Translations under genes and position numbers: made by a program
Assembly (NCBI RefSeq): GCF_964188315.1
Contig: NC_135667.1
Coordinates: 21,204,001-21,268,000, forward strand
DNA from: Podarcis muralis
Lineage: Eukaryota
DNA: 64,000 nt
Direction: 5' to 3'
Part shown: positions 5,604 to 57,766 of the stretch, in pieces
How the letters are laid out: each line of letters begins with the position of its first letter
How positions within the stretch are numbered: the first letter of the stretch is position 1
The notes under the pieces: generated by a model
Database searches by the model: none
Told to the model about the DNA's origin: nothing
Seen by the model: only the letters and a program-made list of their open reading frames with translations

Positions 5604-6132
5604 TTATATGGAGAGCAGCCCGTTGCCGAAACACGCAGCCGAGCAGAAGATGCCCATTTCCACCTGGATGTCTGGGCTCGGCACCTGCAGGAGGGGCGAA
5701 GGCGGGGAGCGTTAGAGAGCACAGAGAGGCGCGAAGGGGCGAAGGAGGGACCCACGTCCGGAGCCCCCGCCCAACGGGGAGGGAGAGAGACTCACCCTGG
5801 AGTTGACGGGGTCCGCGAGTAGGTTCTGGGCGGGAAGGGCGCTCGGGTTGTCGAGGGCGCTGCCGAATAAGTTCAGGTTGATCCAGATTATCCTGGAGAT
5901 CTGCTCGCTCAAGAAGAGGGCTCTACGGGAGGAGGGGGAGAAGAAGGTCAGCTTGCGGGAAACGAGAGTAAAGAGGAGAAGGGCCGGGCCATGGCCTCGC
6001 CATCGGGAGAGGGTACTGCCCGACGGGGCGGGCTTACCTGGGCACAGCCTGGGCGCCGATGTCTGCGGAACGGGACGGGATCTCGGCCCAAACGGGCTGC
6101 ACGTGGCTCTGGTTGACTCCGCTCAGCGCCAT
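5604..6132 (-). CDS. Alpha-globin-derived 3-exon gene G1 (exons 6132-6038, 5922-5796, 5684-5604), 100 aa: MALSGVNQSHVQPVWAEIPSRSADIGAQAVPR/ALFLSEQISRIIWINLNLFGSALDNPSALPAQNLLADPVNSR/VPSPDIQVEMGIFCSAACFGNGLLSI
   Basis: GT-AG introns in phase 2 and phase 0; exon-1 CDS 95 nt; TGATAAAA at 6184-6177; AATAAA at 5513-5508; ungapped similarity to alpha-globin exon 1 and to LSDLHAHKLRVDPVNFK. Confidence 0.8.
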
Positions 6133-6173
6133 CCTGCCAGCTCAACCTCTTGGTGCCGTCGGAGCAGGGGCAG

Positions 6174-6200
6174 CCCTTTTATCACCGCCCGCCCTGCCCC
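6174..6200 (-). promoter_or_regulatory. TATA-position GATAAAA element with upstream GC box, G1 promoter (conserved in the other copies)
   Basis: GGGCGGGCGGTGATAAAAGGGC about 45-50 nt upstream of the ATG in G1-G5; CGATAAAAGG in G7; CATAAAAAGG in G8. Confidence 0.6.
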
Positions 6201-7157
6201 CCGGGTGGCATCTCCCTCGGCCTCTGCCAGCGCCTCCTTCCCTCCCTCGGCCTCGGCAAGGATCCGGGACGGGGCGCACGAGCCCTGGCAAGTGAGCATC
6301 GTCCTCGAAATTCCCGCTGCCTGCTGCCAGGCGGACACCGTCGAGCATCTTCTCTGGACGCTCCCTGGGCGATGATGGCTCGCTAGTCAAGACCCGCCCC
6401 GCCCCCCGCGAGGTCGGCCAGTCAGTCTTCTTCCCCCATTGATGTGCACGGCAAAGGGGCACGAAGGGAGGGGAGGAATGGGGCCTCGCAGAAAGCCGTG
6501 CGCGGAGGTTCTCTCTCAGGTCCTCGCCTGCGGGGGGTGGGGGTGGAAGCTGCGACCCAAATCGAACCAAATGGGTCGCTCCTTTGCCCACCAGGCGCGT
6601 CGCCGGCAGGACTGCAGGTGCGGGAGAGAGGAAGGATCAGTCCATCCAGCTGAATGGGGGCATTTGGCCCTCGGCGTCCTCCCCCCAAGGGACTCACAGG
6701 AAGCTTGGCTGGCAAGAAAGAAGGGGGGCGGGTTCTTGTGGGGATCAGGACTGGCGAAGCAGCAGGAAAGCAGAGACCGTTCTCCCCATTCCAAGTCTCC
6801 CAAAAGGGGAACATATTGAGGGTGGGGCTGAGAATCTAGTTCAGTTTACTTAAAAATACGCAAGACTGAAGAGTTCATGGAAGGCCTAACAGGTTTATGG
6901 AAATCAACAAAGGAGCAGATTTCAAGCAACAACTTGGAACATGAAAAGAAAGAACAACGCTTACCCAATCTATAGTTCAGCCCATCTAATTAGTGAGGTT
7001 AAATATATGTGGGAAGCAGACTGGATTATTAGAAATATATTTTAGGTTACTAAACTGCAGCCCAGTTCCAAACTGGACCATTTCCTACCAACCCTGAAAT
7101 GAGAAAGAAGAATTTTGTTTAATTGCTTATTCGTTAATTAGGATTCCAGGGGAAATG

Positions 7158-8200
7158 GAAGCCAGGCAAGAAGGCCCCGGCAGAAGAGTCTCTTGGGAGG
7201 GCAGCTGTGGGGGTAATGTGGGGCTGGTGCTCCATGCAGGCTTGCCATACTGGGGGAGGGAAGCAGGAGGAGAAGGCGTGAGCACTTTGGGGCATCACAA
7301 TTTTGCATGACCCCCCCCCCCAAGAAAACAGGATGTCCCAGACTGTTGACGGGCATGTGCCAGCCAGAGACCCTCTAGGTGAGTTTTGCAGACTACCAAT
7401 TGGGAACCGCTGATCTACAGTATTCCAAGTGTTTATGAACCACAGATTTGTAGAATGGCATTCTGGGAGCCACAGTCTTGTTTTTAAATGCATTTTCAAG
7501 TGACTCCCACCCAGCATGGAATGGGCCTTTTTCACAGCTGCAGAACACAGGGTTGGCCTTTTCATCCAGCTCTCCACTACCATCTTAAGGTCTCGATCCA
7601 CGTTGGCCACTGCCAATTCAAACCCATGAATATATATGTCTGGAGTTGAGATATGTCTTTTTGCATCACAGAATCATAGAGTTGGAAGGGATCCCGAGGC
7701 TCAACGAGCCCAACCCCCAGCAAGGAAGGAATCTCAGCTGAAGTATCCCAGACAGATGGACATCCAACCTCTGCTTTAAAATCTCCAAGGAAGGCAAGTC
7801 CACCACCTTCAGAGGGAGTCTGTTCCACTGTCAAACAGCTCTTGCTTTCAGAAAGTTATTCCAAGTGTTCACAGCGCTGCCCCCCCCAAGACAGCATTGC
7901 GGACGGCCTCAGCAACCTTAGCGCCCTGCTGGAGGAGGAGATGACCTTCCGAGGGAGTCTCTCTCCCTCCCTGTAGGGGGGCTCTGGAGGGGGTGTCCCT
8001 CCTTTCCTCTTTTGCACCCGCTCAATCCTCCCAGCCTAATGCTCCCCACCTCTGCTTCTCCTGCAGGTGCTGGGTAATATCATCATGGTGATGGCCACCT
8101 CAGAACCCAATTCCTAGGGACCGAGGTCCATTTGGGGTCCCCAATAAAGTATTGGAGGAGGCTGGGCCTCCACGAGACCAGCATCAGAGACCTCGCCCCC
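7158..8200 (+). repeat. Duplicon module C, copy 1
   Basis: Also at about 27250-28260, 35510-36315, 38480-40080 and 44200-45790; more diverged traces at 52380-52660 and about 55850. Confidence 0.8.
7890..8148 (+). pseudogene. Globin relic R1 (exon-2 3' end, intron 2, exon 3, polyA signal)
   Basis: GAC AGC ATT GCG GAC GGC CTC AGC AAC CTT AGC GCC CTG = DSIADGLSNLSAL; intron homologous to G intron 2 but donor GT lost; ctcctgcag acceptor at 8066; VLGNIIMVMATSEPNS*; AATAAA 8143-8148. Confidence 0.65.
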
Positions 8201-8220
8201 CAAAACACATCCAGCAATGG

Positions 8221-13339: not shown

Positions 13340-13340
<1 letters not shown>

Positions 13341-13376
<36 letters not shown>
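13341..13376 (+). repeat. (GT)n microsatellite
   Basis: Uninterrupted gt run. Confidence 0.95.
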
Positions 13377-13377
<1 letters not shown>

Positions 13378-14255: not shown

Positions 14256-17200
14256 TGTGGGAATGTTCTGGGGTGCAGGAGAGGATATATTGACTAATTA
14301 TATCCTAATCCAACTTGTGCTAACAAGTTCCCAAAATATCAGCAGAGTTTATAAACATTCCCCTTTTGGTGCGCAACGGTAACGTGTGCACAGGTTCGCT
14401 AGAACCTCTATAATAATTACCCTGGTAATTTCCCCTTTAGTTCCCTCTTAAAATACAAGACACGACACAGTCTTCATAAAAGTATAAAAGAGTTTACTCA
14501 CGTTCTGTTCACAATGTTATCCCAGAAGGCACAGCTTAAAAAGGTTACATACATTTAGGATCTATCTTATAGCAAGATAGGCCTTATCTCCTCTCTTGGC
14601 TGGGAGCCAAGAGAGCATCCTTAGATGTTTCCTCATCGAAGGAAAATGGCAGAGAGAGAGATGGCTGCCTGCCCTGTGCTTTTTGTCATTACCTGCACAG
14701 GTGAGGCCACACCCACCTCTGGTCACATGTGGAGGAAATCCGTCCCCAGGAAGTTTACCTGCTTGCTGGACAGACATCCCCCCATGTTCTAACATGTACA
14801 CTCTAGGAATGTTGTCATTGACTGCTCCTGTGTTTACATCCCACATACCCCTTCTCAGGCAATACAACATATACAAAATATAAACAACTTTATTCAACCA
14901 CCCAGAGTCCCAGCTTGACACGTAGATTCTGGAAACTCTCTCTTGGTAGGGGTTTCGTCAGGATGTCAGCAGTCATCTCTTGGGTGCTGCAGTAGGATAG
15001 TTCCACAAGTCCATCCTGGATCATCTGGCGTATGTAGTGGTACTTAACCCCAATGTGTTTTGTTCTGGCCAGGAACTTCTCACTCTGCGTCAGCTTCAGG
15101 CAACTTTGATTGTCCTCCAGCAAGCTGACAGGCCCTTTCCTCACCAACCCAAAGTCCTTTATGAGTTGATCAAGCCAGGCGATCTCTCTGCAGGCTTCTG
15201 TTGCTGCAACGTATTCTGATTCTGTGGAAGATAATGCTACACAGCTCTGTTTATAACTGCCCCATGAAATAGGTCCATCACCAAACATGAAAACATGACC
15301 ACTTGTTGATTTATAGTCAGCATTATCCCCAGCCCAATCAGCATCAGTATACCCAATCAACTTAGGGTCTCTGACGGCTGGTAACCTTAATTTACAATTC
15401 ATGGTACCCTTCAAATATCGCACCACCCTCTTTACACCTGCCCAATCATGCTCAGTGGGAGAATTCACTTTTCTGCTAAGAATCCCCACAGCATTAGCTA
15501 AGTCAGGTCTACATGTGGTAACTAAATACAAAAGTTTACCAATCGCCGACCTGTAGTCATTGTTGTCTGGCAACTGCTTCGAATCCTGCTGATTCTTCAG
15601 GAAGTCAGTAGCCATCGGTGTAGCAACTGGATGTGCGTCTTGCATCTGCATGTGCTCAACTAGCTCGTGGATCTTCTGTCTTTGGCTAAGAAGAAATGAT
15701 CCGTCCTCTTCTCTTTCCACCTGGATCCCGAGGTAGTACTGGACATCTCCTAGCTCCTTGACCTCCACCTCTTTACTAAGGTGCTTTACTATCTGTGTAT
15801 AGTCTCTCTCACTTGCTGTGGCAATAATCAGGTCATCAACGAATGCTAGGATATATGAGAATTGTCCATTATTTGACTTACTGTACAAGCACTTGTCAGC
15901 GTCGCCTTGCTTGTACCCAAGTTGCGTCAGCATTTTATGCAACTTCTGGTTCCAGGCTCTGGCAGCCTGTTTAAGTCCATAAAGTCCTTTCTGTAGTTTG
16001 CACACTAGATGTGCCTCATGTGGTTTTACAAAACCTTTGGGCTGTTTCATATAAATTTCTTCAGAAATCTGCCCATGTAGAAAAGCGGTAGCAATGTCAA
16101 TGTGTTTCACCCTCATTTTCTTGGAGGCTGCAATGCTTAAAAGCATTCTTACGCTGCTGTACCTCACAGTTGGTGCAAAAACTTCATCGTAGTCTTCACC
16201 AAAACGCTGTGAAAATCCCTGTGCTACAAGTCTAGCTTTGTAGCGCTGCACTTCTCCTTCTGACCCCTTCTTAACCTTGAAAACCCATTTACTGCCAATG
16301 GCCTTCTTACCGGGAGGCAGCTCAGTGAGTGTCCAGGTCTTGTTCTGATGCAGTGCATCCATCTCCTCCTGCGCGGCCTTCCTCCAGAGACTGGCTTCAG
16401 CAGCTGGCATCTCCTGTATCTCTTCCCAAGTGGAAGGTTCCTGTGGAAACGCCGACCCTGCAAAGTAGGACAGCCGTAATGGTGGGACACCTTTGTTGGT
16501 TCTGGATGAGATCCTGACCTCTGGTTCTGCGACCGCATCAGCTTCCTCATCCTCCTCCAACGCAGGCATGTCCCCATCTGAGTCCTCATCTTCGTCTCTG
16601 GTGCCGCCAGGGTTCTGGTCCTCTGCGTCTTCTGGTGCGTCGCCTGTAGGGGGCACTGTAACACTCGAAGGCAGATTATTACTTTGTGGGGTCTCAAAAG
16701 GGAAATATACAAACTCTTGAGTCCTTTCTGACTCATCTGAAGAATCCACAACAGTGTTCTTAGTGTCTACTTTTCCATATTCATCAAAATAAACCGCATG
16801 GTATGCATTTGTCTTACCAGTTTGTAAGTCCATAATTCTGTATCCTTTGCCTCCAGAAGCATATCCCACAAGGATACCTGCTTTTGCCCTGGAGTCAAGC
16901 TTGTGTCTGTGTTCTTTGGGCACGTGGAAGTAACACGGACTTCCAAACACACGTATGTGTGACAGATTGGGAGCTTTCCCATGCCAAAGTTCAAATGGTG
17001 TGCGCTCTGCACCTTTAGTTGGCAGTCTATTCTGCAAATAGACTGACGTGTATACTCCTTCGGCCCACAGCTTTTGTGGCAAACGTGCATCCTTTAGCAT
17101 GCACCTTGTCATGTCCATAATGGACCTAAACTTTCTCTCAGCTATGGCATTCTGCTGTGGTGTGTAAGGAATTGTGGTTACGTGTGCAATTCCTTCTCTG

Positions 17201-19778
17201 GCCAGGAGAGCCTGCACTTCATTTGAGCAGTACTCACCTCCATTGTCACTCATTAACACAGCTGGAGCTCTCTGGAATTTGTTCTTGACCATGGCAATGT
17301 ATTCCTGGAGCTTGTCCACTGTCTCACTCTTCTCTTTGAGGAAATATACAACACAAAATCTTGAAAAATCATCCAGAAATATTAAAATGTATCTATTCTT
17401 TCCCAGTGAGGGAACATTCATGGGTCCACATATGTCAGTGTGCACTATGTCAAGCACTTTGTTGCTTCTTTGTTCTGCACAACGTGGAAATGAAGGTTTT
17501 ATAGCCTTCTCAGTAATACAGCTTATGCACTTTGCTGGAGCTTTGTTGCTCTGCTTTACCTGCAAACCTCTTACAAGATTTCTTTTCTGTAGATCCAGAA
17601 TGGCGCTGGTGTCCCTGTGTCCTAGCCTTCTGTGCCATAAGTCCAGATCTGCTTCATCCTTCTGGCTGGAATGTGCCACTTTTGCAGACTGGTTCTCTGA
17701 AAGATCAAGCTCATATACACCATTTATTAGCTTTGCTTGAGCAAACACTTTGCCACTTCTAGTCACTTTACATTCTCCATTTCCAAATGTGACCTGGAAA
17801 CCTTTCTTGTCCAAAGTGGACACGCTGATTAAATTGCAACTCAGCTCTGGAACATACAAAACTCTAGAGATTGTGTTCTCAATGCATTCATTGTTTATAT
17901 TGCATTTCAGGCTCATGGAACCTGCACCTTTTGCTTTAACAATGTTGCCATCTGCAATCTCAATTTCAGATCCTTCTTCATCATTTATTTCATTAATCTC
18001 ATTAAAATAGTCCTTTTTATATGAAAAATGCGAACTGGCACCTGAATCTAAAATCCATTTGTTACGTTTATTTTCACGATTCTGGACAGCTAAGTTCCTT
18101 TCTTGCAGTAACCATGTGCATTCACATTTCCCCTTCTTTTCCCCTTTTGGCTGAAAGGGGTGGGGTTTCTTGGCTTTAGGAGCTCTGCAGTTCTTTGCAA
18201 TGTGTCCTTCTTTGTTACAATTGAAGCAAATCACTTTCTTAGGCATCTCTTTGGACTTTGTACATTGCCTAGATGCATAACTGCTGTCCTTGCTTCTAGC
18301 ATTCCTCACTGGAGATTCAGCTCTATCTCTGCATTCTTCTTTTAAATAACCAATCAAGTCTTTAAAAGTCAGACCTTGTCTATGATCCATCAAACTTACA
18401 AATGTGCTAAAGCGTGGTCCAAGTGATGATAACAAAAATGCTATCTTTGTATCCTCATCAAAAGCTTTGGGAGTCAGATCAATTCTTTGAATAATCTCAG
18501 TAAACTTGTTGATGTGCTCTGTGAATTCCTCTTTTGAATTCATCCTCAATCTGGTTAATTTACACACCAAGTTTCTGAAGCTGTTTATGCTAGATTCTCC
18601 ATACACGCGTTCAATATCTCTTAAGATTTGAGATGCATCATCTGTACTATTTATTAATGATAGCTGCTCATCACGAAGTCCACTCAAAATTATGTGTCTA
18701 GCTTCGCTGTTCATGCGTTTCCAAGCACTTATCTTGGCTAAATCTCCCTCAGACGATCCCGTAGGTTGAGGGTTTAAAGCTTCCAAAATATGCTTATAAT
18801 CTAAACATGCTATCAAGCGCTGCTTCCAGTGTATGAAATTGTATTCATTCAGCACAGGCATTCCAAGCTTTGCATCACTATCAAAAGCTGCTCTAGCCAT
18901 CTTAAAATCCAAAATTTGAAAATTCTTCAAAATTTCAAAATTTCTCAAAATTTTAAAATCAAAATCTCAAAAATCTCAAAATGCAAAACAATTCTTCACT
19001 GCCTTGGGTCACTGTGAACTCTGAGGGAAGGGGGGGGGGTTGCTTAATCCCCACTGCACAATGGAACAAAGGACCATGTGCTTACCAGGAAGTTAACTCA
19101 GAAAAAATACTACTCAACTCAAAATCACAATCCAACGCAATCCTTCAAAAATACGCAGAAATATGCAATACTGGGCCCACTAACCCTTTGTGGGAATGTT
19201 CTGGGGTGCAGGAGAGGATATATTGACTAATTATATCCTAATCCAACTTGTGCTAACAAGTTCCCAAAATATCAGCAGAGTTTATAAACATTCCCCTTTT
19301 GGTGCGCAACGGTAACGTGTGCACAGGTTCGCTAGAACCTCTATAATAATTACCCTGGTAATTTCCCCTTTAGTTCCCTCTTAAAATACAAGACACGACA
19401 CAGTCTTCATAAAAGTATAAAAGAGTTTACTCACGTTCTGTTCACAATGTTATCCCAGAAGGCACAGCTTAAAAAGGTTACATACATTTAGGATCTATCT
19501 TATAGCAAGATAGGCCTTATCTCCTCTCTTGGCTGGGAGCCAAGAGAGCATCCTTAGATGTTTCCTCATCGAAGGAAAATGGCAGAGAGAGAGATGGCTG
19601 CCTGCCCTGTGCTTTTTGTCATTACCTGCACAGGTGAGGCCACACCCACCTCTGGTCACATGTGGAGGAAATCCGTCCCCAGGAAGTTTACCTGCTTGCT
19701 GGACAGACATCCCCCCATGTTCTAACATGTACACTCTAGGAATGTTGTCATTGACTGCTCCTGTGTTTACATCCCACA
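14256..19778 (-). mobile_element. Full-length Ty1/copia LTR retrotransposon
   Basis: LTRs 14256-14845 and 19189-19778 (590 bp each, TG..CA, no difference seen by eye); TSD CCTGC (14251-14255, 19779-19783); PBS-like GGTTAGTGGGCCCAG next to the 5' LTR; PPT GAGAAGGGGTA next to the 3' LTR. Confidence 0.97.
14890..18900 (-). CDS. Copia gag-pol polyprotein (single ORF, about 1336 aa from the ATG at 18900)
   Basis: CFNCNKEGHIAKNC knuckle, WILDSGASSH protease, LWHRRLGH and TDICGP/SDNGGEY/ERK integrase, KARLVAQG and FVDDLI RT, TDADWAG/EDNQ/ADILTK RNase H, in PR-IN-RT-RH order. Confidence 0.96.
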   Translation of the reverse strand: MARAAFDSDAKLGMPVLNEYNFIHWKQRLIACLDYKHILEALNPQPTGSSEGDLAKISAWKRMNSEARHIILSGLRDEQLSLINSTDDASQILRDIERVYGESSINSFRNLVCKLTRLRMNSKEEFTEHINKFTEIIQRIDLTPKAFDEDTKIAFLLSSLGPRFSTFVSLMDHRQGLTFKDLIGYLKEECRDRAESPVRNARSKDSSYASRQCTKSKEMPKKVICFNCNKEGHIAKNCRAPKAKKPHPFQPKGEKKGKCECTWLLQERNLAVQNRENKRNKWILDSGASSHFSYKKDYFNEINEINDEEGSEIEIADGNIVKAKGAGSMSLKCNINNECIENTISRVLYVPELSCNLISVSTLDKKGFQVTFGNGECKVTRSGKVFAQAKLINGVYELDLSENQSAKVAHSSQKDEADLDLWHRRLGHRDTSAILDLQKRNLVRGLQVKQSNKAPAKCISCITEKAIKPSFPRCAEQRSNKVLDIVHTDICGPMNVPSLGKNRYILIFLDDFSRFCVVYFLKEKSETVDKLQEYIAMVKNKFQRAPAVLMSDNGGEYCSNEVQALLAREGIAHVTTIPYTPQQNAIAERKFRSIMDMTRCMLKDARLPQKLWAEGVYTSVYLQNRLPTKGAERTPFELWHGKAPNLSHIRVFGSPCYFHVPKEHRHKLDSRAKAGILVGYASGGKGYRIMDLQTGKTNAYHAVYFDEYGKVDTKNTVVDSSDESERTQEFVYFPFETPQSNNLPSSVTVPPTGDAPEDAEDQNPGGTRDEDEDSDGDMPALEEDEEADAVAEPEVRISSRTNKGVPPLRLSYFAGSAFPQEPSTWEEIQEMPAAEASLWRKAAQEEMDALHQNKTWTLTELPPGKKAIGSKWVFKVKKGSEGEVQRYKARLVAQGFSQRFGEDYDEVFAPTVRYSSVRMLLSIAASKKMRVKHIDIATAFLHGQISEEIYMKQPKGFVKPHEAHLVCKLQKGLYGLKQAARAWNQKLHKMLTQLGYKQGDADKCLYSKSNNGQFSYILAFVDDLIIATASERDYTQIVKHLSKEVEVKELGDVQYYLGIQVEREEDGSFLLSQRQKIHELVEHMQMQDAHPVATPMATDFLKNQQDSKQLPDNNDYRSAIGKLLYLVTTCRPDLANAVGILSRKVNSPTEHDWAGVKRVVRYLKGTMNCKLRLPAVRDPKLIGYTDADWAGDNADYKSTSGHVFMFGDGPISWGSYKQSCVALSSTESEYVAATEACREIAWLDQLIKDFGLVRKGPVSLLEDNQSCLKLTQSEKFLARTKHIGVKYHYIRQMIQDGLVELSYCSTQEMTADILTKPLPRESFQNLRVKLGLWVVE

Positions 19779-21239
19779 CCTGCACCAACCAGAAATGAAG
19801 ACTATGGAGAGAGGCTTGTGGGAGCTGAGGGGCTCCCAGCACACCTGATCGCCGCCAGCAGGGGCAGCGCGTACCTGTGTTCCCAATGCGGGAAAGGGTT
19901 TTGTTGGCCGTCGGCGTTGGCCGTCCACCAGAAGACCCACATGGGGGAGAAGCGGCACCGCTGCGCTGAGTGCGGGAAGCGCTTTGGCCAGCGCAGCCAT
20001 TTGACGGTGCAGCGGAGGATCCACTCGGGAGAGAAGCCGTACGGGTGTCCTCAGTGCGGGAAGCAGTTTGTCGACTCCTCTCACCTCACCAAGCACCAGA
20101 GGACACACTTGGGGGACAGGCCCCAGCACTGCGCTGAGTGTGGGCGAAGGTGTGCCAATAAACGCTCGCTCGTGCAGCACCAGCGAATTCACAGCAGGGA
20201 GAAGTCCTAGGCCTGGGGATGAGCCTAGGCCCCTCTTGAGATTCAGGGGCTGAGTTATATTGCTGTAAGGCGGAGATTTGGCCCTCTAGGTATCACTGGT
20301 CTGCAGCTGCCATCATTGCTGGCCATGCTGGCTGTGACGGAGGACCGAAGGTTCAGTTCCTCATTCCTGGTGTAACTGAAGAGAAAGGAGCCCCTGTTTC
20401 CACCCTTTGTCCCCCTGGGGGAAGAAACCAACAGATGCTCAGGGGTCTCTGGGGGTTTTCCTGTCTCTCACAGCTACAATAAACCTACCATTAAAATTAT
20501 GGACTGGTCATTTCTTCGTCAGAGGGCAAACGGGCAAATTTAGCAGGGGATCAAATACTTCCCCCCTCTCACTGTATATAGCAATGAGGAAGCATGCTTG
20601 GGTGAGCTGGTCCTGCAGGTCGGTAGTAGCAGCCAGCTGTGCCTAGCGCTCTGAATATCAAACAGAATTCTTCCCAGCCCTTGGAGCCCTTTTGGAATGT
20701 AAAAAAAATATGTTTTCTTTTAAAATTAATGCATTGACAAATAAGTAGATAAGAAGGCGTTCATGTTTCAGGAGCCTACTTGAAATATAAAGGGAATGAC
20801 ATCTGAACCGGTGTTTGATTTGGTGGTATGTATGTCATTCAGTTCTGAAGGTGGGCTGAAGAATTTGTTGTTATATCTGCCTTCACAACATGAAAGCGTT
20901 TGTGACTGAATTTTACCCCAGGTCAGAGAGGTGTCATTGAGTATAGGAGGTGTGATCAGAATCCATATTTGTTTCTCTTAAAAACAGGCATGACCTCTAA
21001 CAGAAGAGGTGATTGTAAATGAACTTAACGGAAGATAGTCAGGCCTACCAGACCAATGGGCCTGTACATTTATCTCTTCCCCCTCCCCATTACACATCTT
21101 TTAGAGTGGTCTAAAATTTTGATTTCTTCTCCAGGGCCAACACTTGGGCAAAGTGACGTCTGGTGCCCCCCCCCCCAATCGATAAGTCCTGGTGGGCTAT
21201 CCTGACTATGGCAAGGGCAAAAAGAGCAGTGGTCTAGGC

Positions 21240-39917: not shown

Positions 39918-40081
39918 GTATTTGAGGAGGCTGGGCCTCCACGAGACCAGCATCAGAGACCTCGCCCCCCAAAACATACCCAGCAATGACAATCAGTCTG
40001 CACTCTGTGTCCATTGAGGGTTCTCAGTTCTTGGGCAATTGGGAGAGTTCTTCCCCTTTGGGATTTTTCTTAATTTCCCTT

Positions 40082-41600: not shown

Positions 41601-41793
41601 GATGACTCTGAGTGTCCCTCCCAACTCCATTATTTCCCCGCCCCGCCCCCACCCTGTTCAGCCTAAATAGACTCCAGGAGAGCAGTGAGAGCTAAAAGCA
41701 GGTTTATTGGGGGTCGGGGGAGGGACGTGGTCGAGGCTGCCACGTCCAGGCAGCACTTCTGCGGAGGGCGCCGGCTGCTTCTCTGGCCTAGCG

Positions 41794-42340: not shown

Positions 42341-43440
42341 CCTGCCAGCTCAACCTCTTGGTGCCGTCGGAGCAGGGGCAGCCCTTTTATCACCGCCCGC
42401 CCTGTCCCCCGGGTGGCGTCTCCCCCGGCCTCTGCCAGCGCGTCCTTGCCTCCCACGGCCTGGGCAAGGATCCGGGACGGGGCGCACGAGCCCTGGCAAG
42501 CGAGCATCCTCCTCGCAATTCCCGCTGCCTGCTGCCAGGCGGACACCGTCGAGCATCTTCGCTGGACGCTCCCTGGGCGATGATAACTCGGTAGTCCTGA
42601 CACCCGCCCCCCCGCGAGGTCGGCCAGTCAGTCTTCTTCCCCCATTGCTGCGCACGGCAGAGGGGAACGAGGGGAAGGGAGGAATGGGGCCTCCCAGAAA
42701 GCCGGGCGCGGAGGTTCTCTCTCAGGTCCTCGCCTGCGGGGGTGGGGGTGGGGGTGGAAGTTGCGACCCAAATCGAACCAAATAGAACCAAATCGAACCG
42801 CCAGGCCAGTCGCCGGCAGGACTGCAGATTCGGGAGAGAGGAAGGATCAGTCTGTCCAGCTGAATGGGGGCATTTGGTCCTCGGCGTCCTCTCCCCAAGG
42901 GACTCCCCGGAAACTTGGCTGGCAAGAAAGAAGGGGGGCGGGTCCTTGTGGGGACCAGGACTGGCGAAGCAGCAGGAAAGCAGAGACCGTTCTTCCCATT
43001 CCAAGCCACCCAAAAGTGGAACATATTGAGGGTGGGGCTGAGAATCTAGTTCACTTTACTTAAAAATACGCAGGACTGAAGAGTTCGTGCAAGGCGTAAC
43101 AGGTTTATGGAAATAAACAAAGGAGCAGATTTCAAGCAACAACTTGGAACATGAAAAGAAAGAACAACGCTTACCCAATCTATAGTTCAGCCCAGTCTAA
43201 TTGGTGAGGGTAAATATATGTGGGAAGCAGACTGGTTTATTAGAAATATATTTTAGGTTACTAAACTGCAGCTCAGTTCCAAACTGGACCATTTCCTACC
43301 AACCCTGAAATGAGAAAGAAGAATTTTGTATAATTGCTTATTCGTTAATTAGGATTCCAAGGGAAATGGTCCAGTTTGGAACTGAGCCCCAGTTCAGTAG
43401 CCTAGAAATTACAGCTCAGTTACGCTGGGCTGAACTATCG

Positions 43441-43712
43441 ATTTGTTGTTGTTTAGTTGTTTAGTCGTGCCTGACTCTTCTTGACCCCATGGACCAGAGT
43501 ACGCCAGGCCCTCCTGTCTTTCACGGCCTCCTGCAGCTTGGTCAAACTCATGCTCGTAGCTTCGAGAACACTGTCCAACCATCTCGTCCTCTGTTGTCCC
43601 CTTCTCCTTGTGCCCTCCATCTTTCCCAACATCAGGGTCTTTTCCAGGGACTCTTCTCTTCTCATGAGGTGGCCAAAGTACTGGAGCCTCAGCTTCACGA
43701 TCTGTCCTTCAG
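43441..43712 (-). mobile_element. RTE-BovB LINE 3' end (duplicate of the 33.2-kb insertion)
   Basis: Same translation and same flanks as 33213-33470, in inverted orientation. Confidence 0.9.
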
Positions 43713-45392
43713 AACTATAGATTGAGTCAGTATTATTCTTTGTTTTTACTTTCCAAGTTGTTGCTTGAAGACTCTTCCTCTGTTTTTCCCCATAAACCTA
43801 TTTATGGGAAAGCCTTGCACAAACACTTGGGTATGAAACAGATGCCCTTCTTTGTTCAATATTTGTTGCTACACAGCAAGTGGTGGAACAAGATTCTTCC
43901 GGTGGATCTCAAGGAACACAAACACCACCAGCACCAACAAAGAGGGCGCCTCTAATCACTCCAGTCTTAGACTTGAAAGAAGTACAGTAACAAGTTTAAG
44001 GAGCGGGTGCAGATTCAGAGTCACTATGTGTTGAGAGTGCAAAGTTGGATAAGATATGGAAAGTGTTTTAAACTGTTTTTGTTTGGTTATGTTATTTAGT
44101 GTTTTTGTATTGTATTGTTCGTTTTGTTTTTTGTTTGTTTTGTTGTGTTTAAATTGTGGGAAAAGTAATAAAAACCTTTTTTTTTAAAAAAAAAAAGAGA
44201 GAGAGTGCAAAGTTGGAGGCAGCAGGGAGCCCTCAAGACTGTCCTGGAAGGAACTCCAGGGGATCAGCAACCAGGGATGATAAGTTGACACCTTCGCCAC
44301 AGACTGCAACCAACGGTTCATTTCCTGTGTTCACCAAAGTGGGTGGTCATAATAGGTGTCCAGGGTGGGTCACCGACACATACCGTACATTCCTATCCAC
44401 ACCAAACCAAGTGGTTATTAGAGGCAATAGAGGCCATCATGCAGGGACCTGGCCATGTATTCCTATCAAAACACAGACATACACTTTTGGTGCACGCTTA
44501 TGAGTGGCAAAGTGGGTGTAAGCCACATCTATGAGAAGGCAGAAACATGAGTGGCAGCAGAATTCCCCGGTTCAGCTAACCCAAAAGCTTAAAGAAGAGG
44601 AGCGTGTGTGACCTTGCAGGCCATTTCTCCCCTTGTCCACGAAAGGCTGAGCATGGAAGCCAGGCAAGAAGGCACCTGCAGAAGAGTCTCTTGGGAGGGC
44701 AGCTGTGGGGGTAATGTGGGGCTGGTGCTCTATGCAGGCTTGCCATACTGGGGGAGGGAAGGAGGAGGAGAAGGCGTGAGCACTTTGGGGCATCACAATT
44801 TTGCATGAACCCCCCCCCCCCAAGAAAACAGGATGTCCCAGACTGTTGACGGGCATGTGCCAGCCACAGACCCTCTAGGTGAGTTTCGCAGACTACCAAT
44901 TGGGAACCGCTGATCCACAGTATTCCAAGTGTTTTTGCACCACAGATTTGTAGAATGGCATTCTGGGAGCCACAGTCTTGTTTTTAAATGCATTTTCAAG
45001 TGACCCCCACCCAGCATGGAATGGGCCTTTTTCACATTTGCAGAACACAGGCGTGGCCTTTTCATCCAGCTCTCCACTACCATCTTAAGGTCTCGGTCCA
45101 AGTTGGCCACTGCCAGTTCAGACCCAGGAATATATATGTCTGGAGTTAAGATATGTCTTTTTTTGCATCACAGAATCATAGAGTTGGAAGGGATCCCGAG
45201 GCTCATCGAGCCCAACCCCCAGCAATGAAGGAATCTCAGCTGAAGTATCCCAGACAGATGGACATCCAACCTCTGCTTTAAAATCTCCAAGGAAGGCGAG
45301 TCCACCACCTTCAAAGGGAGTCTGTTCCACCCTTAAACAGCTCTTGCTTTCAGAAAGTTATTCCAAGTGTCCACAGCGCCCCCCCCCCCCAA

Positions 45393-45637
45393 GACAGCAT
45401 TGCGGACGGCCTCAGCAACCTAAGCGCCCTGCTGGAGGAGGAGATAACCTTCTGAGGGAGTCTCTCTTCCTCCCCGTAGGGGGGCTCCTCCTTTCCTCTT
45501 TTGCACCCGCTCAATCCTCCCAGCCTAATGCTCCCCACCTCTGCTTCTCCTGCAGCTGCTGGGTAATATCATCATGGTGATGGCCACCTCAGAACCCAAT
45601 TCCTAGGGACCAAGGTCCATTTGGGGTCCCCAATAAA
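45393..45637 (+). pseudogene. Globin relic R3
   Basis: As R1; exon 3 from 45556 reads LLGNIIMVMATSEPNS*; AATAAA 45632-45637. Confidence 0.65.
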
Positions 45638-45802
45638 GTTTTTGAGGAGGCTGGGCCTCCACGAGACCAGCATCAGAGACCTCGCCCCCCAAAACATACC
45701 CAGCAATGACAATCTGTCTGCACTCTGTGTCCATTGAGGGTTCTCAGTTCTTGGGCAATTGGGAGAGTTCTTCCCCTTTGGGATTCTTCTTAATTTCCCT
45801 GT

Positions 45803-46660
45803 TGTTGTGCAAACCACAGGGGTGTGGGGCCTCCCCCCAAGCCTTGTGGCCCCTCCCACTTCTGTGTAGGCAGCGCTAGTTGAGCTCAGTAAGCAACCTC
45901 CCTCTTGGCTGAAGAGGTAGAAAAAACAACCTGGGCAGCTTGGCAGGTCCCAAGCCCAGACCAGGAGGCTCTTGGTTCAAGGCCCCTTCCCTCAGGCCAT
46001 GAGCCCGCTGCTTGGAAGGGCCCATCATTGCAAGGAAATCTGCAGCTCCTCCTAACTGACTGATATTCTAAGGACCAAATGAGAGTAGCAGCACTTCACC
46101 TCTGGCGACTGAGCAACCTCTGATATCATTCCTTCTTCTCTTCAGCCAGTTTTGGCCAAACCACAGTGTGTTTCTTTTCTGATGCAGGTTCTTCTGACAC
46201 AGAGGGGACATGGGACTCCCTGGCAGACGTGGGAAGCGAGACCCTTCTGCAGGGGCAGGTGGGCAGGGTACTAGACTGCTCTGATCTACCAGAGACATCC
46301 AAATCCTTACAGGGGAAGCTGACACCTTTAGAATTATGCAGCACAAAGGTTTTACTTTTGTCATGAACTTGCTAGGCAGTCTCAGGCAAGCCACTCTCCA
46401 TTTCAGCTCCTTTCCCCCATGTTCAACATGAGCAAAATAATGTTCGCATTCCTGCATTGTGGGGGTTGGACTGGATGCTCTTATTCAGTTAATTAGCCTC
46501 TTTTGTCCACCATTTTGTCTCCATTGCAGTGGTTCTATGAGGTAGCAAGATGGCTGCCATTGCCACCTCCTATTTCCATAATAATTAATTTTTGTACCTC
46601 TTCCAACTGACTAGGTTGTTCCAGCTACTCTGGGTGACTTACTAAAGAATTACTGGGCGG
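45803..46660 (+). repeat. Duplicon module A, copy 5
   Basis: Matches 3776-4635. Confidence 0.8.
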
Positions 46661-46662
46661 AG

Positions 46663-46747
46663 GCCGGGTGCCGATGTCTGTGGAACGGGACGGGATCTCG
46701 GCCCAAACGGGCTGCACACGGCTCTGGTTCGCTCAGCTCAGCGCCAT
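46663..46747 (-). pseudogene. Globin-derived exon-1 fragment G6
   Basis: ATGGCGCTGAGC..GTGCAGCCCGTTTGGGCCGAGATCCCGTCCCG..GACATCGGCACC; no splice donor or later exons; a Penelope fragment abuts the ATG. Confidence 0.75.
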
Positions 46748-49610: not shown

Positions 49611-50212
49611 TTTAATTTATAAGCTAAACTTCCCCAAATCCCTCAACCGTTCCTCATCAGGCTTGGTTTGCACGGGACACTTGTTCCGTTGAATTGCACT
49701 TGCCATGTTACTGCCCATTCACTCATTTCGGAGGGGTCCTTTTGGAGACCCTTTCTTCCTTTCACCCCCCCCCCAATGTACTATCATCCTCAACTTTGGC
49801 CACTTCACTGGTCTTTTCTAGCGCTGGACTGTTGAGGAACAAATTAAAAAGAAAGAAACCTGCTCTTTTCCCTTCCCGATCCTTGGAGAACTCCGCTTTC
49901 CCCTTCTGTCCATGGGGAGAACTTCCTGCTTCCTGCTGCTTCACCAGCTCCTGATGCCCTCGTGGAACACTCCTCTTCTGAATGGCGGGAGGCATCAGGA
50001 ATGGCAGGGAAGCTACTCCCTTGCCAGGGCTCGTACGCCCCGTCCGGAATCCCAGCCAAGGCCGTGGGAGGCTGGGACGCGGGAGAGGCAGCAGTGCCGA
50101 CGGAAGGAAGAGCCCGAGAGAGACGCCACTCGCGGGGGCGGGGAGGCTGGGGTGGACGGCGATAAAAGGTCTGCCCTCGCTCCGACGGCACCGAAGAGGT
50201 TGAGCTGGCAGG

Positions 50213-50737
50213 ATGGCGCTGAGCGGAGTCAACCAGAGCCACGTGCAGCCCGTTTGGGTCGAGATCCCGTCCCGTTCCGCAGACATCGGCGCCCAGGTTA
50301 TGCCCATGTAAGCCCGCCCCGTCGGGCAGGGACCCTCTCCCGGTGGCGAGGCCATGGCCCGGCCCTTCTCCTCTTTACTCTCGTTTCCCGCAAGCTGACC
50401 TTCTTTTCCCCCTCCTCCCGTAGAGGTCACCTCTTGAGCGAGACTATCTCCAGGTTAATCTGCAACATCGACCTGAACACATTCATCCGCGCCCAGAGCC
50501 TCCCCAGCAACCTGAGCGCCCTGCCCGCCCAGAACCTGCTCGCGGACCCCGTCAACTCCAGGGTGAGTCTCTCTCCCTCCCCGTCACGTGGTTCCCTCCT
50601 TCGCGCAGCTCCGTGCTCTTTAACGCTCCCCGCCTTCGCCCCTCTAGCAGCTGCCGAACCAAGACACCCAGGAGGAAATGGACATCTTCACCAAGGCTGC
50701 GCTCCTCGTCAACGTGCTGCTCTCCATATACCTCTAG
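50213..50737 (+). CDS. Alpha-globin-derived gene G7 (exons 50213-50307, 50424-50562, 50651-50737), 106 aa: MALSGVNQSHVQPVWVEIPSRSADIGAQVMPI/GHLLSETISRLICNIDLNTFIRAQSLPSNLSALPAQNLLADPVNSR/LPNQDTQEEMDIFTKAALLVNVLLSIYL
   Basis: GATAAAAG at 50161; canonical splice sites; ends TCC ATA TAC CTC TAG at the ancestral stop; AATAAA 50817-50822. Confidence 0.8.
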
Positions 50738-53170
50738 GACAAAGAAGCAGCCGGCGCCCTCCGCAGAAGTGCCGCCTGGACGTGGCAGCCTCGACCATGT
50801 CCCACCCCCGACCCCCAATAAACCTGCTTTTAGCTTTCACTGCTCTCCCGGAGTCTATTTAGGCTGAACGGGGGGGGGGGGATAATGGAGTTGGGAAGGA
50901 CACTCAGAGTCATCTAGTCCAATCCCCGGAATCAAATCGTCCCTGGCAGACGGCCATCCATCCTCTGCTTAAAACCTTCCAAGGAAGGAGAGTCCACCAC
51001 CTCCCGGGAGTGTCCCTTCCAAGGTAGGCAGCTATAGCAGGGGAGCTTGCAGGCCTGGAGGGGCCCAAGATGACAGGGAACACCATTTTGCCTCTCGAGA
51101 AGGGCTTCCTTTCATTAATAACATCTCAATTAATAACATATCAAATCTTGCTATGTCATATCCAAAATAATAAAAACAATCCAATTAAACATCTGAACAC
51201 CCCCCCCCCAACCTGCTTTTAGGTCTCACTGATCTCCCGGAGTCTCCTTACACGGGCAAATCACAGAACTGTAGAGTTGGGAGGGAAACTCAGAGTCATC
51301 TAGTCCAACCCCCTGCAATGCAGGAATCTGAACCAAATCGTCGCTGACAGGTGGCCATCCAACCTCTGCTTAAAACCTTCCGGGAGTGTCCCTTCCAAGG
51401 CAGAATAGCTCTATAGCAGGGGACCTGCAGTTTGGAGTAGCATTCTCTGACTATGTCCAGAGTACATTATTGACACTTTTGAGGAATTCCAGTGGACCTC
51501 CGTCCTGGATCAGGATAAAAGAGTCCACATCACAGGGTTAGCCTTAAGCTCCAGGTAGCCTTAAGCTCCAATATCTGCTGTTGAATAAATTAACCATCAG
51601 GCTGGCATGCAATGTTTGCCTCATGCCTCCAGAGTTTTGCATGGACAAATTACATATTTTTTCTTATGCAACTATCCCTCCACCTCCTCTTGTGTCCCTT
51701 TTTTCAACATGATTATAGGTTTAGTTTGTTGTTTCCTCAGTTCTGGAAACTTCTGTTAACAATCCTGCTGTTAGTTAACCTTGCTGTTAGTTAATTTGCT
51801 GCAAATTGCCAGAGCTACTCCAGTATTCATGGCTGCTGCTACTTTTACGACTCCTGTCTGACCAACAAGCATCTTGGGACGGAGGCAATAAGCAGATTGT
51901 GCTATAAATGACAGGTTGTAATACTGGAACTGAGGGCCTACGAATGAAGTGGATGGACAGAAGTTTCAGAACAGGGATGGGGCCTGAATGTCCTAAAAGG
52001 GACATTCCAGAATCAAATAGGAAACCAGGATGGCTTCTGTAAATCTGGGGTTGTCCCTAGAGAATTGGAGGATCTGGTGTCTTAGAAACATATTTATGAT
52101 AATCCAGCCTGGTTCTCCCATTATTTAATCTCACCTATTAGACTGGTCTGAATTACAGATTGGCTAAGGGTTCCTTTTTCTTTTCATGTTCCAAGTTGTT
52201 GTTCAAAGTCTGTTCCTCTGTTTATTTCGACAAACCTATTATGTTGTGTGTATTTTTATGTAGGCTGAACTAAATGTCCAGCCTCAGGCTCAATATGTTA
52301 CCTTTGGGGTGTTTGGCAAGATGGGTATTAATCGGATGACTTTGAGCAAGTGGAGGGAATGGGTGAAAACGAAGAGTCACTGTGTGTTGAGGGCGCTAAC
52401 TTGGAGGCAGGAGGAAGCCCTCCAGACATTCCTGTGAAGAACTCCAGGGGCTTTACCAGGGCCTTGGCTGTGGACTTCAACCAATGTTTTCTTTCCTGTG
52501 TTCACCAAAGCAGGTGGGTATTATAGGTGTGGCACAGTGGGTGCACACCGCTAGAAGGCAGAAACGTGAGTGGCATCAGAATCCCTGGGTTAACTAAACC
52601 AGAAGTTAAGGAGAAGAGGGGCGAGTGTGGCCTTGCAGGCAGGAAGGCACATTAAGAAGAAACCCCACAGTCATCTAGTCCAGGCCTCTGCAATGCAGGA
52701 ATCTCAGCTAAAGCATCCCTGACAAGTGGCCAGTCAACCTTTGCTTAAAACCCTCCCAGAGAGGAGAGTCCACCACCTCCCGAGAAAGTCTGTTTCAGAA
52801 CAGATGTATAGCAGGGCCTGGAGGGAGCCAATTATTAGGAGAGCACCGTTTTGCCCTTGGAGAAGGGCTCCGTGTTTGCTGGCAATACCAACACCCCAGG
52901 CTGGAGGTTCTTCAGGAGAGGAGACAAGAATTCCCACTGGTTTCAATGCTCAGTGGATTTGCTCCCAAGACCAAGCTGTTCAGCATTGAAAGCACACAGC
53001 ACCAACTTGGCCACACCCGCTCTATGCATTTAAAACACTATGGGCAGCCATGACTTCCCCAAAATAATCCTGGGAACTGTAGTTGGGCGTTGAGAGTTGT
53101 TAGGAGACCCCTATTTCCCTCCCAGAGCTACCATACTAAGAGTGGTTTAACAACCAATCCTTCTTCCCAA

Positions 53171-55531: not shown

Positions 55532-56549
55532 ATAATTCCCAATTCTGTGGAAATTGTAGCCTAGTGAAGGGTCCCCTAGCACCTCTCACACCCTTATCAA
55601 ACTACAGGATTATTTGGGGGAAAGCCATGACTGTTCAAGTGGTATGAGTGCTCTAGATATATAGCCAGGATGTGGCCTTTGTTTAGCTATGCACAGAACT
55701 CAGGATAGTTATCTCTTCTTTATCTGCTACACCAAGCAGTGGAAAGAAAGGCATGAGGATTGGGAGTGGTAAAGACTCTGAGATGATGCTTACCCTGACT
55801 TGCTACTTCTGCTTGGGTGCCATGATCTGGCACATGATCACAGCTCTCCAAAACAGGATGTCCCAGGCAGCTGATGGGTAGGTTCCACGGACGCCCTGGG
55901 TGGGTCACACAGAACCCCTGAGGTCCACGGACCACTGACTGGGAACCACTGGTTTAGAGAAAAGGCAAGGAAAGGATGCCATGATTGGAATCTATAACAT
56001 GATGCCAGGTGTGGGACAAGTTTTTCTCCCTCTCTCGTCACACTATTACTTGTGTAATTCTAGTAGGTGGAATTGCTTGCAGAAATGTGCACCTTAAGCA
56101 AACAGTTGAACAAAAACACACATCTAAGGAGAAATGCACATTGGAAAAGCTGGCATATTTTGTGAGGGCTTTAAAACAAAATCACCAGCTGATGTACGAG
56201 TGTGGCGAACTGAACTCAGGATTGTAAAAAGGGGAAACTGAGAAATATCGGAATTGTCCCATCTTTCCACATACAGCCATTCTTTACCTTCCGGAACAAA
56301 CTCCATCCTCTCTTGTGACCATCAGCTCTTGGGGTCATAGTTTCAGAGTTCTTGCCTACAGTGGCTGCTGCTGTCAGTGCTTGGCAGCCTTGGAAGGTTT
56401 TAAGCCGAGGATGGATGGCCACCTGCCAGGGACGACTTGGTTCAGATTCCTGCATTGCAGGGGGTTGGACTAGATGACTCTGAGTGTCCCTCCCAACTCT
56501 ACAATTCTGTGATTTGAGTTCCACTTTTAAATATAGAGGTCTGGATGGA

Positions 56550-57130
56550 AGAAAAATGAATATTTTCAAGAAAGAGCTTCTCCGAGATTTGGTGTTGGTT
56601 ATAAAGGACTACCAAAAAACCCGGCAAAAAGGAACTGAGAGAGAATTAAGGGCCTCGGATGTGAGGGCTCCAGGCTGATAGTAGATAGACTGATGGATAT
56701 TGGGGATCGAAACCGGGAAAGGGGGGCTGGAGTTTGGGAATCCAAAGGGCGTACAATTATATTTTGAACTTTTCTTCTTTTTTATTTTGTTTTGTTATGA
56801 GTATGAAAAAGGGGAATTCGTGGAAGGGAAATGGGGTCAACCTTAGAAAAAGATTTTAAATGTTTAAAGACTGTGGACTATAAAGGGAAAGTGGTTACAT
56901 AAAAAGAATTAAATTGAATAATGGGCTAAATATAATAAGATTAAAAACTGGGGACAAGAACTTGTTGAATTAAATAAATGGAAATGGAATACAAGAAGGG
57001 GAGGTGTGGGGAAGTCTTGGAAAGATGTTATTGAAAGTAAGGTTCAAATGTAAATGTTTTCTTTTTTTCTTTTTTCTTTTTTTTGGATTTTCTGAAAATT
57101 TTTAATAAATATGATATTAAAAAAAAAATA
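56550..57130 (+). mobile_element. 3' fragment of a relative of the 53.3-55.4 kb element
   Basis: ORF end RELRASDVRAPG* matches KELRASDRRSPG*; followed by an L1-like 3' UTR, AATAAA and an A tail. Confidence 0.55.
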
Positions 57131-57337
57131 CAATTCTGTGATTTCTCCGCACCCCAGTCCAGCCTAAGGAGATTCGGGGAGAGCAGTGAGAGCTAAAAGC
57201 AGGTTTATTGGGGGCGGGGGGGGGGAGGTCGAGTCTGCCACGTCCAGGCGGCACTTCTGCGGAGGGTGCGGCTGCTTCTCTGGCCTAAGGTCAGCATGAC
57301 GGGGCTGCGGCGGCTGTCGATGGAGACGCTGGCGCTG

Positions 57338-57766
57338 TTATCTAGGAGCCCGGACGTTGACGTCCATTATCACCTGGATGTCTGGCCTCGGCAGCTGCGG
57401 GAGGGGCGAAGGCGGGGAGCGTTAGACGGAGAGGACGGAGCGGCGCGAAGGGGTGAAGGAGGGACCCATGTCCGGAGCCCCCGCCCGACGGGGAGGGAGA
57501 GAGACTCACCCTGGAGTAGAAGGGGTCCGCAAGCGGGTTCCCGCTGTCGATGGCGCGGACGACGCTGGAGGCGATGGCCGCTGCGTACAGCCTGCAGGAG
57601 ACGAGAGTAAAGAGGAGAAGGGTCGGGCTATGGCCTCGCCATCGGGAAAGGGTCTCTGCCGGACGGGGCGGGCTTACCTGACCCCTGTTCTGATGTTTTC
57701 AGAAAGGGACGGGATCTCGGCCCAAACGGGCTGCACGTGGCTCTGGCTGGCTCCGCTCAGCGCCAT
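57338..57766 (-). CDS. Divergent alpha-globin-derived gene G8 (exons 57766-57678, 57591-57510, 57394-57338), 75 aa: MALSGASQSHVQPVWAEIPSLSENIRTGVR/LYAAAIASSVVRAIDSGNPLADPFYSR/LPRPDIQVIMDVNVRAPR
   Basis: CATAAAAA box, canonical splice sites, AATAAA at 57209-57204. Shorter with an early stop, so it may be a pseudogene. Confidence 0.6.

Follow-up and report, generated by a model that had tools for sequence, protein, structure and literature searches.

Putative Podarcis-specific offshoot of alpha-globin: a family of small genes with a proposed constant scaffold and two variable helices

Analysis of a 64,000-nucleotide (nt) stretch of the genome of the lizard Podarcis muralis (chromosome OZ076966.1 of assembly GCA_964188315.1, ~21.20 to 21.27 Mb; referred to here as the window) revealed a family of small three-exon genes related to alpha-globin. 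Judged from sequence and gene structure, the descent of this family from alpha-globin is solid. We consider it probable (roughly 0.6) that the family is real, transcribed, protein coding, and specific to Podarcis, that it arose by duplication of an alpha-globin gene, and that its products combine a constant scaffold with two variable recognition helices.

A preliminary description of the same sequence had counted seven three-exon units with open spliced frames of 75 to 108 amino acids (aa), one exon-1 fragment, and three relics. This inventory was reproduced when the units were located by BLAST of the unit at 34700 to 35460 against the window, aligned seven-way, and spliced in silico. Over ~750 nt, the copies share 83 to 93% identity, and three of their predicted proteins match NCBI P. 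muralis products exactly (LOC144325096, LOC144325097, and LOC144325310), so that chance is excluded as the origin of the units. The family elements of the window are as follows.

5488 to 6226, minus strand: main-type gene, 100 aa; exons 6132-6038, 5922-5796 (127 nt), and 5684-5604 (coding part of exon 3); TATA-like GATAAAAGG at ~6182, AATAAA at ~5513.
25496 to 26253, minus strand: main-type gene, 105 aa; exons 26159-26065, 25948-25807 (142 nt), and 25703-25623 (coding part of exon 3); protein P0006, LOC144325097.
34700 to 35460, plus strand: main-type gene, 106 aa; exons 34794-34888, 34998-35148 (151 nt), and 35268-35342 (coding part of exon 3); the fossil Y-R-stop of alpha-globin follows its stop.
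36399 to 37159, minus strand: main-type gene, 108 aa; exons 37065-36971, 36854-36704, and 36593-36513 (coding part of exon 3); protein P0004, LOC144325310.
41683 to 42434, minus strand: main-type gene, 108 aa; exons 42340-42246, 42136-41986, and 41874-41794 (coding part of exon 3); protein P0001, LOC144325096.
50109 to 50842, plus strand: main-type gene, 106 aa; exons 50213-50307, 50424-50562 (139 nt), and 50651-50737 (coding part of exon 3).
57184 to 57815, minus strand: relic-type gene, 75 aa; ATG at 57766, exon 1 of 89 nt to 57678, exon 2 57591-57510, exon 3 from 57394; the original globin acceptor is used, and a premature stop lies ahead of the conserved ..LT..-stop tail.
46653 to 46747, minus strand: isolated exon-1 fragment, 88% identity to exon 1.
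7955 to 8070, plus strand: old relic of a diverged globin-derived copy (end of exon 2, intron 2, start of exon 3).
39717 to 39839, plus strand: old relic, copy of the relic at 7955-8070, inside a ~5.7-kb repeat unit.
45458 to 45559, plus strand: old relic, third copy.

The alpha-globin origin proposed in the preliminary description was confirmed by profile searches, a protein language model, and gene structure. A profile of eight family members compared with all PDB sequences matched 107 chains; the 60 chains listed were all hemoglobin alpha, and the best single-domain chain had an E value of 2.6e-5. P0009, a P. lilfordi member that keeps more of the ancestral sequence, matched the alpha-A chains of birds and turtles with an E value of 1.5e-8. 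This match spans alpha residues 2 to 39 and 68/79 to 141, the terminal VLTSKYR included, and no alpha-D chain was found among the 60 best matches. In the ESM atlas (protein language model), 95 of the 100 nearest clusters were Pfam Globin, and the first named one was "hemoglobin alpha embryonic." The HBA reference gene has an exon 1 of 95 nt, a split Arg codon, and a phase-0 intron after DPVNF-K. The family keeps the 95-nt exon 1, the split Arg codon, the phase-0 intron after DPVN-x-R, and a fossil KYR-stop, and it shares with alpha-globin the residues L3, S4, V11, W15, G26, A27, and R32. The homology is visible only via the family profile or the relic-type member; hmmscan of three single members against Pfam at E values up to 10 returned no family, the threshold of PF00042 not being reached. 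The globin signal expected from profile searches was obtained with the family profile, which matched only hemoglobin alpha among the 60 chains listed, and not with the single members compared with Pfam.

The gene architecture given in the preliminary description (95-nt exon 1, TATA-position element, GT-AG introns, and AATAAA) was recovered in the alignment. In exon 1, which ends in a split AG/G Arg codon, the six main-type copies have 95 nt each and the relic-type copy has 89 nt. Every intron is bounded by GT-AG. In all copies, the GATAAAAGG element lies ~50 nt ahead of an ATG with a good Kozak context, and AATAAA is located ~90 nt past the stop. Exon 2 ends in GACCCCGTCAACTCCAGG followed by GT, read as DPVNSR ahead of the GT, and the exon-2 ending LSALPAQNLLADPVNSR was found six times in the six-frame translation of the window. 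In the main-type copies, a CAG-to-CAA mutation has altered the original acceptor of intron 1, and a new acceptor 33 nt downstream is used instead. The 33 nt skipped in this way still read L-T-F-F-S-P-S-S-R, compared with M-F-L-S-F-P-T-T-K in alpha-globin; together with main-type exon 2 they make up 184 nt, compared with 205 nt in alpha-globin. The main-type stop codon, TAA, lies one or two codons ahead of the fossil ..(Y)R-TAG, which is still in frame. The promoter-proximal region holds a GATA-type TATA box, TGATAAAAGG, with CCACCC and GC boxes upstream of it, an arrangement typical of erythroid globin promoters. A (GT)n microsatellite is located at 34515-34535, ~260 nt upstream of the ATG, within the conserved upstream region of the 34794 gene.

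The products of ~100 to 108 aa are acidic, with a net charge mostly between 0 and -10 (+2 in one P. lilfordi relic-type member). At the position of the proximal His87, every copy has Pro (LSALPAQNL aligned with LSDLHAHKL), and the distal-His region of the E helix is hypervariable, with no conserved His. The proteins are therefore predicted to be non-heme and unable to bind heme in the globin fashion, in agreement with what had been proposed. Exon 1, a constant module, is what is left of helices A/B. In exon 2, the variable part corresponds to the former CD corner and E helix, and the constant motif NLSALPAQNLLADPVNSR that follows corresponds to the end of the F helix, the FG corner, and the start of the G helix. 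Exon 3 represents the former H helix, with most of helix G deleted ahead of it. No signal peptide was detected (mean Kyte-Doolittle hydropathy of the first 20 residues, ~0.1), and no convincing membrane span was found in the family proteins. A tail-anchored or membrane protein was rejected because the C-terminal hydrophobic stretch, the former H helix, has only ~15 residues with Kyte-Doolittle values of 1.4 to 2.0. AlphaFold2, run with an eight-sequence alignment, predicted only two helices, at residues 36 to 58 and 86 to 107, with a predicted local distance difference test (pLDDT) of 54 and a predicted template modeling score (pTM) of 0.23. In this low-confidence model, the two predicted helices coincide with the two variable segments.

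Divergence among the copies is concentrated in these two segments. Among the six main-type copies of the window, the mean pairwise difference is 4% in exon 1, 4% in intron 1, 8.5% in intron 2, and 5.5% in the 3' untranslated region (3'UTR); it reaches 38% (30 to 59%) in the 5' part of exon 2 and 20% (8 to 32%) in exon 3. The jump begins at the first base after the intron-1 acceptor AG. Parsimony on an 11-copy tree gave 0.16 to 0.27 changes per site in the introns, 0.29 in the 3'UTR, and 0.18 in exon 1; the corresponding values were 1.68 for the variable exon-2 part and 0.71 for exon 3. Compared with the adjoining introns, the variable helices change 3 to 10 times faster, and the variable part of exon 2 alone changes 6 to 10 times faster.

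Selection was studied with maximum-likelihood (ML) codon models (IQ-TREE, GY+F1X4, a separate tree for each segment, P against omega = 1). The ratio of nonsynonymous to synonymous rates (omega, or dN/dS) was 2.87 (P = 6e-4) in the variable part of exon 2 and 2.64 (P = 0.013) in exon 3. The constant motif NLSALPAQNLLADPVNSR gave 0.28 (P = 0.02), indicating purifying selection. Tree-based counting with ancestral states agreed with this pattern, and eight independent, close, and unambiguously aligned pairs showed 66.8 nonsynonymous versus 9.2 synonymous changes (P = 0.012). The exon-2 lengths of 127, 130, 139, 142, and 151 nt are all 1 mod 3, and all exon-2 indels are in frame; indels in the introns measure 1, 7, 8, and 16 to 27 nt. 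The ~130 changes in the variable part created no stop codon, against an expectation of 3 to 6 (P = 0.003 to 0.04). As a neutral control, the relic-type copy at 57184 to 57815 was compared with a dead P. lilfordi copy (L002); the two are ~9% apart in exons and introns alike (P = 0.26). The proposal of neofunctionalized rather than neutrally evolving genes is supported by omega above 1 in the variable parts, omega below 1 in the constant motif, and the kept frames; a dN/dS of about 1 throughout, which had been named as contrary evidence, was not observed.

Comparison of single pairs revealed that exons have been exchanged as cassettes. The genes at 34700 and 42434 differ at 17 of 668 positions outside exon 3 and at 23 of 81 inside it (P = 6e-14); exon 2 contributes only 3 differences in 151 positions, and of the codon differences, 21 are nonsynonymous and none is synonymous. 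In exon 3, the 34700 gene and a P. lilfordi gene are almost the same (4 differences in 81 positions). The copies L3a and L3b likewise differ at 8 of 657 positions outside exon 3 versus 13 of 81 inside (P = 1e-8). Near-identical exon 3 sequences in the two species, together with mismatched pairings, indicate that the exon-3 types predate the species split and have recombined with differing exon-2 types. Replacement of exon 2 by unrelated sequence was rejected since the cassettes stay alignable to one another at the nucleotide level. The pattern fits flanks homogenized by conversion around old cassettes, and the contrast fits maintained diversity as well as accelerated change.

The family is restricted to two Podarcis species in the data searched. 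An exhaustive hidden Markov model (HMM) search of 1.84 billion representatives returned family members only from P. muralis and P. lilfordi, besides one spurious bacterial S-layer protein; globins fell below significance at that database size. A word-indexed search with P0009 for lizard alpha-globins gave 16 candidates, all of them family members. The proposed lineage specificity is supported by these searches. P. lilfordi carries at least three copies and one dead copy at the syntenic place, adjoining SCAN-zinc-finger genes. The dead copy (L002:5513-6204), with its acceptor lost and its divergence uniform, is a pseudogene by definition.

P0009 is encoded by an intronless P. lilfordi copy on another chromosome (L001:10001-10297; OX395140.1), beside a GRAM/RabGAP-TBC gene. 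It lacks both introns, and its exons are joined precisely where splicing had been predicted. From a start ~180 nt upstream of the ATG, it extends to ~20 nt past AATAAA, with a short A run at its end. A 14-nt direct repeat on either side (L001 9805-9818 and 10639-10652) represents a target-site duplication. The element as a whole (L001:9805-10652) is a relic-type member into whose 3'UTR a tRNA-derived short interspersed element (SINE) was later inserted. As a processed retrocopy, it implies that the germ line once contained a family mRNA that was correctly spliced and polyadenylated. The retrocopy begins upstream of the TATA-like element, which places the start of the source transcript upstream of the presumed promoter.

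Each gene is covered by a CpG island of 1.2 to 1.5 kb (GC content of 0.60 to 0.65, observed/expected ratio of 0.68 to 0.84; 0.19 to 0.47 in the 3' flanks). Such islands argue against germline methylation of these young duplicates, and together with the retrocopy they indicate germline activity of the family. The NCBI models of LOC144325095 comprise a fully spliced isoform, X3, and two isoforms, X1 and X2, which keep intron 1 and start upstream of the TATA-like element. The product of the 50109 to 50842 gene equals isoform X3 except for one NAGNAG-encoded Gln: a tandem TAG/CAG acceptor at 50644-50651, ahead of exon 3, yields NCBI isoforms that are one Gln apart. P0005 and the 106-aa reading of the 50109 gene form such a pair, as do P0012 and P0010. 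For the 50190-50842 gene, up to 0.48 of the sampled words were present in RNA runs of three studies. In run X15, 13 reads crossed the border of exon 1 and intron 1, none lay in intron 2, and a few mapped to exon 3 or the 3'UTR; for both convergent genes, every read had the orientation expected of sense RNA. No RNA-assembly contig encoding exactly P0005 or P0001 was found, only the genome record. A SINE-like repeat at 33800-34093, upstream of one family gene, reached word depths of thousands in all four RNA runs, with many loose ends, and is a highly transcribed or very high-copy element.

The family region is a SCAN-zinc-finger gene neighborhood and not the alpha-globin cluster. The genes are carried by a tandem/inverted repeat unit of 5.3 to 5.7 kb with 90 to 97% identity (36317-46665, 3685-8219, and 23847-28924). 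Each unit also holds an older globin relic, which indicates that an earlier globin-derived generation was already there when the unit was amplified. Two further copies and a relic are located 7 to 14 kb upstream of the window (stretch L003). The preliminary description had called the family hidden. With regard to annotation it is not, since the genes are already modeled as uncharacterized proteins by NCBI and in the P. lilfordi annotation. The NCBI label is only "uncharacterized LOC1443250xx," and RefSeq gives no domain annotation.

Several observations weigh against a family of functional proteins. Exon 1, with an omega of 1.08, did not differ significantly from neutrality. The codon models rest on 29 to 33 codons and 9 to 11 sequences, and recombination or gene conversion, uncertain alignment of the variable part, and multinucleotide mutations can inflate omega. 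In the variable part, synonymous sites have diverged ~3 times as much as the introns, and the contrast with the flanks is thus partly one of old cassettes with homogenized flanks and not of acceleration alone. The profile search of the 1.84 billion representatives found no orthologue outside the genus Podarcis. The spliced RNA sequencing reads that the preliminary description had asked for were not seen: three contig runs and one raw-read run contained no spliced junction read over 33800-38200, at very low coverage, and the sparse contigs and reads in this interval run through intron 1, so that the low-level sense RNA mostly retains it. A transcript that keeps intron 1 runs into a TAA immediately behind the split Arg codon and would encode only 32 aa. 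The proteins are predicted from genes, and their C termini end at differing, newly acquired stops. The low-confidence AlphaFold2 model allows no claim about the fold.

An unlikely alternative is an amplified and leakily transcribed globin pseudogene that was spread passively by ~5.7-kb segmental duplication, whose frames are open through youth and in which patches that escaped conversion have drifted. The tandem/inverted duplications of 5.3 to 5.7 kb at 90 to 97% identity, the low expression with intron 1 often retained, the loss of every heme ligand, the poor structure model, the neutral appearance of the relic-type copies, and the raised synonymous divergence of the variable part would all suit such an origin. 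However, drift does not yield a dN/dS of 2.6 to 2.9 beside 0.28 in the adjoining motif, would not avoid all stop codons, and explains neither a divergence that starts exactly at the splice acceptor nor at least five in-frame indels beside intron indels of 1, 7, 8, and 16 to 27 nt. CpG islands have also been kept in every copy. All seven window copies are open when spliced, and with segment omegas of 2.9, 2.6, and 0.28 they do not show the pattern of unprocessed globin pseudogenes (disrupted frames or splice sites, dN/dS of about 1, and exons diverging like introns).

Two more specific functions were considered, on the basis of analogy and short promoter motifs. It appears improbable that the proteins are chemosignals convergent with the rodent exocrine-gland-secreting peptides (ESPs). 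Such chemosignals would be released, without a signal peptide, from holocrine epidermal (femoral) glands or similar tissue and read by the vomeronasal system, the helices encoding species or individual identity. The ESPs are the only known alpha-globin-derived, non-heme, fast-evolving family of small proteins, and beta-globin is reported to be a ligand of the vomeronasal receptor Vmn2r88 (PMC7826187). Lineage-specific expansion with diversifying selection suits signaling proteins, and the protein fraction of lacertid femoral secretions has been studied for chemical communication. The lizard proteins lack a signal peptide, however, the femoral-gland proteomics papers found make no mention of hemoglobin, and the link is pure analogy. 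A similar long shot would be proteins made in nucleated red cells and directed against blood parasites or erythrocytic viruses, or made in germ cells and engaged in intragenomic conflict, the helices tracking a fast-evolving target. An inherited globin-type promoter (GATA-type TATA box TGATAAAAGG with CCACCC and GC boxes) would be in line with this, as would the germline activity suggested by CpG islands and retrocopy and the low-level reads from several RNA studies with no relation to one another, which would be expected if the transcript were blood borne or broadly expressed. These promoter motifs are short, however, and since the retrocopy and the NCBI isoforms X1 and X2 start upstream of the TATA element, the latter may not be part of the promoter in use.

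Under the reading favored here, of functional Podarcis-specific genes, an alpha-A-type globin gene would have been duplicated at the DNA level with its introns and promoter-proximal region, moved into the SCAN-zinc-finger gene region, and later lost heme binding. The constant parts (exon 1 and the NLSALPAQNLLADPVNSR motif) may provide a shared scaffold or docking element, with the two variable helices forming a recognition surface that is kept diverse. The products could function by binding or antagonizing a partner in an evolutionary conflict or recognition system of some kind, either within the cell or after release through cell lysis or holocrine secretion. A wider proposal is doubtful, namely, that alpha-globin was recruited a second time, independently of the ESPs but convergently with them, to form a hypervariable family of ligands or recognition proteins in which scaffold remnants carry two diversified former heme-pocket helices. 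In that case, the helices might encode identity or follow a fast-evolving partner, for example, a germline conflict element, a blood parasite, or a vomeronasal receptor, with positive selection and exon-cassette shuffling as the sources of their diversification.

The window also contains mobile elements and a further CpG island. An intact open reading frame (ORF) of 1,352 aa at 14890-18948 (minus strand) encodes the gag-pol (gag, zinc knuckle, integrase, and RVT_2) of a Ty1/copia-type long terminal repeat (LTR) retrotransposon, which is possibly still active. Three successive ORFs at 4-3184 (plus strand) encode a reverse transcriptase, a tyrosine-recombinase N-terminal SAM-like domain, and a GDSL/SGNH hydrolase, a combination that we take to be typical of Ngaro/DIRS-like retroelements; a further reverse transcriptase ORF lies at 30249-31490. 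These large ORFs were rejected as partners of the family, being transposon genes. A CpG island without a family gene is located at 21001-22250 (GC content of 0.64, observed/expected ratio of 0.83), with an internal inverted repeat at ~21293-21590. The adjoining sequence at 20501-21239 shows 95 to 97% identity to sequence beside SCAN-zinc-finger genes in the stretches L003 and L004.

The vertebrate globin repertoire (Hb, Mb, Ngb, Cygb, GbX, GbY, GbE, and Adgb) is regarded as well catalogued. A heme-free alpha-globin descendant under diversifying selection would, if true, add a new branch to it and would be only the second case, after the rodent ESPs, of a hemoglobin turned into something else. 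The intact gene structure and the surviving intermediates (relic-type genes, the ..VLTSKYR retrocopy, and the intronized start of exon 2) would make the stepwise dismantling of a classic fold traceable. The family would also be a compact vertebrate example of conserved introns, accelerated exons, and exon-cassette shuffling. A survey of lacertid hemoglobins kept only BLAST hits below 1e-8 with normal globin lengths, thresholds at which the family genes would have been missed. The LOC identifiers and the UniProt entry of the family are not mentioned in any paper found. The earlier statement that no description of such a family is known thus stands for the literature, with the rodent ESPs as a conceptual precedent that had gone unmentioned (PMC7826187).

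Comparison with sauropsid alpha-A globin shows correspondence in the length of exon 1, the split Arg codon, the phase-0 intron 2 after DPVN-x-(K/R), the LSxL..DPVN block, the H-helix remnant, and the ..LTSKYR tail of the relic-type copies. Unlike alpha-A globin, the lizard proteins are ~35 to 40 residues shorter, most of the G helix being deleted; 11 codons at the start of exon 2 became intron, Pro has taken the place of the proximal His, and conservation of the distal His has been lost. They have no Pfam globin match, and their genes lie beside SCAN-zinc-finger genes, outside the alpha-globin cluster. The contrast between conserved introns and accelerated exons is known from the phospholipase A2 (PLA2) isozymes of crotaline snake venoms and from conotoxins, which are secreted toxins with signal peptides and disulfide scaffolds. 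As in these toxins, the introns and UTRs of the lizard genes are far more conserved than the coding segments, dN exceeds dS, and the genes form tandem arrays; the lizard family, however, has neither a signal peptide nor a cysteine framework, and its variable parts are two helices of a dismantled globin. Reuse of the globin lineage without heme is also seen in bacteria, in the N-domain of the stressosome protein RsbR and in photoglobin, which are ancient sensor domains with the full globin fold (PMC8717448). In contrast to these, the lizard proteins are truncated, recent, and vertebrate specific.

The closest parallel is provided by the rodent ESPs, secreted pheromones with known V2R receptors, whose mature part derives from a retrotransposed (intronless) alpha-globin joined to a CRISP2 signal-peptide exon (Niimura et al. 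2020, PMC7826187). Both families are alpha-globin derived, non-heme, helix rich, lineage restricted, tandemly expanded, and variable in length and sequence between paralogues and species. They differ in that the N terminus of the lizard proteins is globin exon 1, with no CRISP2-type signal exon and no signal peptide. The copies of the lizard cluster also keep both globin introns and the globin 5' region and originated by DNA duplication, only the dispersed L001 copy being intronless. The lizard family is therefore not a member of the ESP family but an independent event of the same kind, in lacertids as opposed to rodents.

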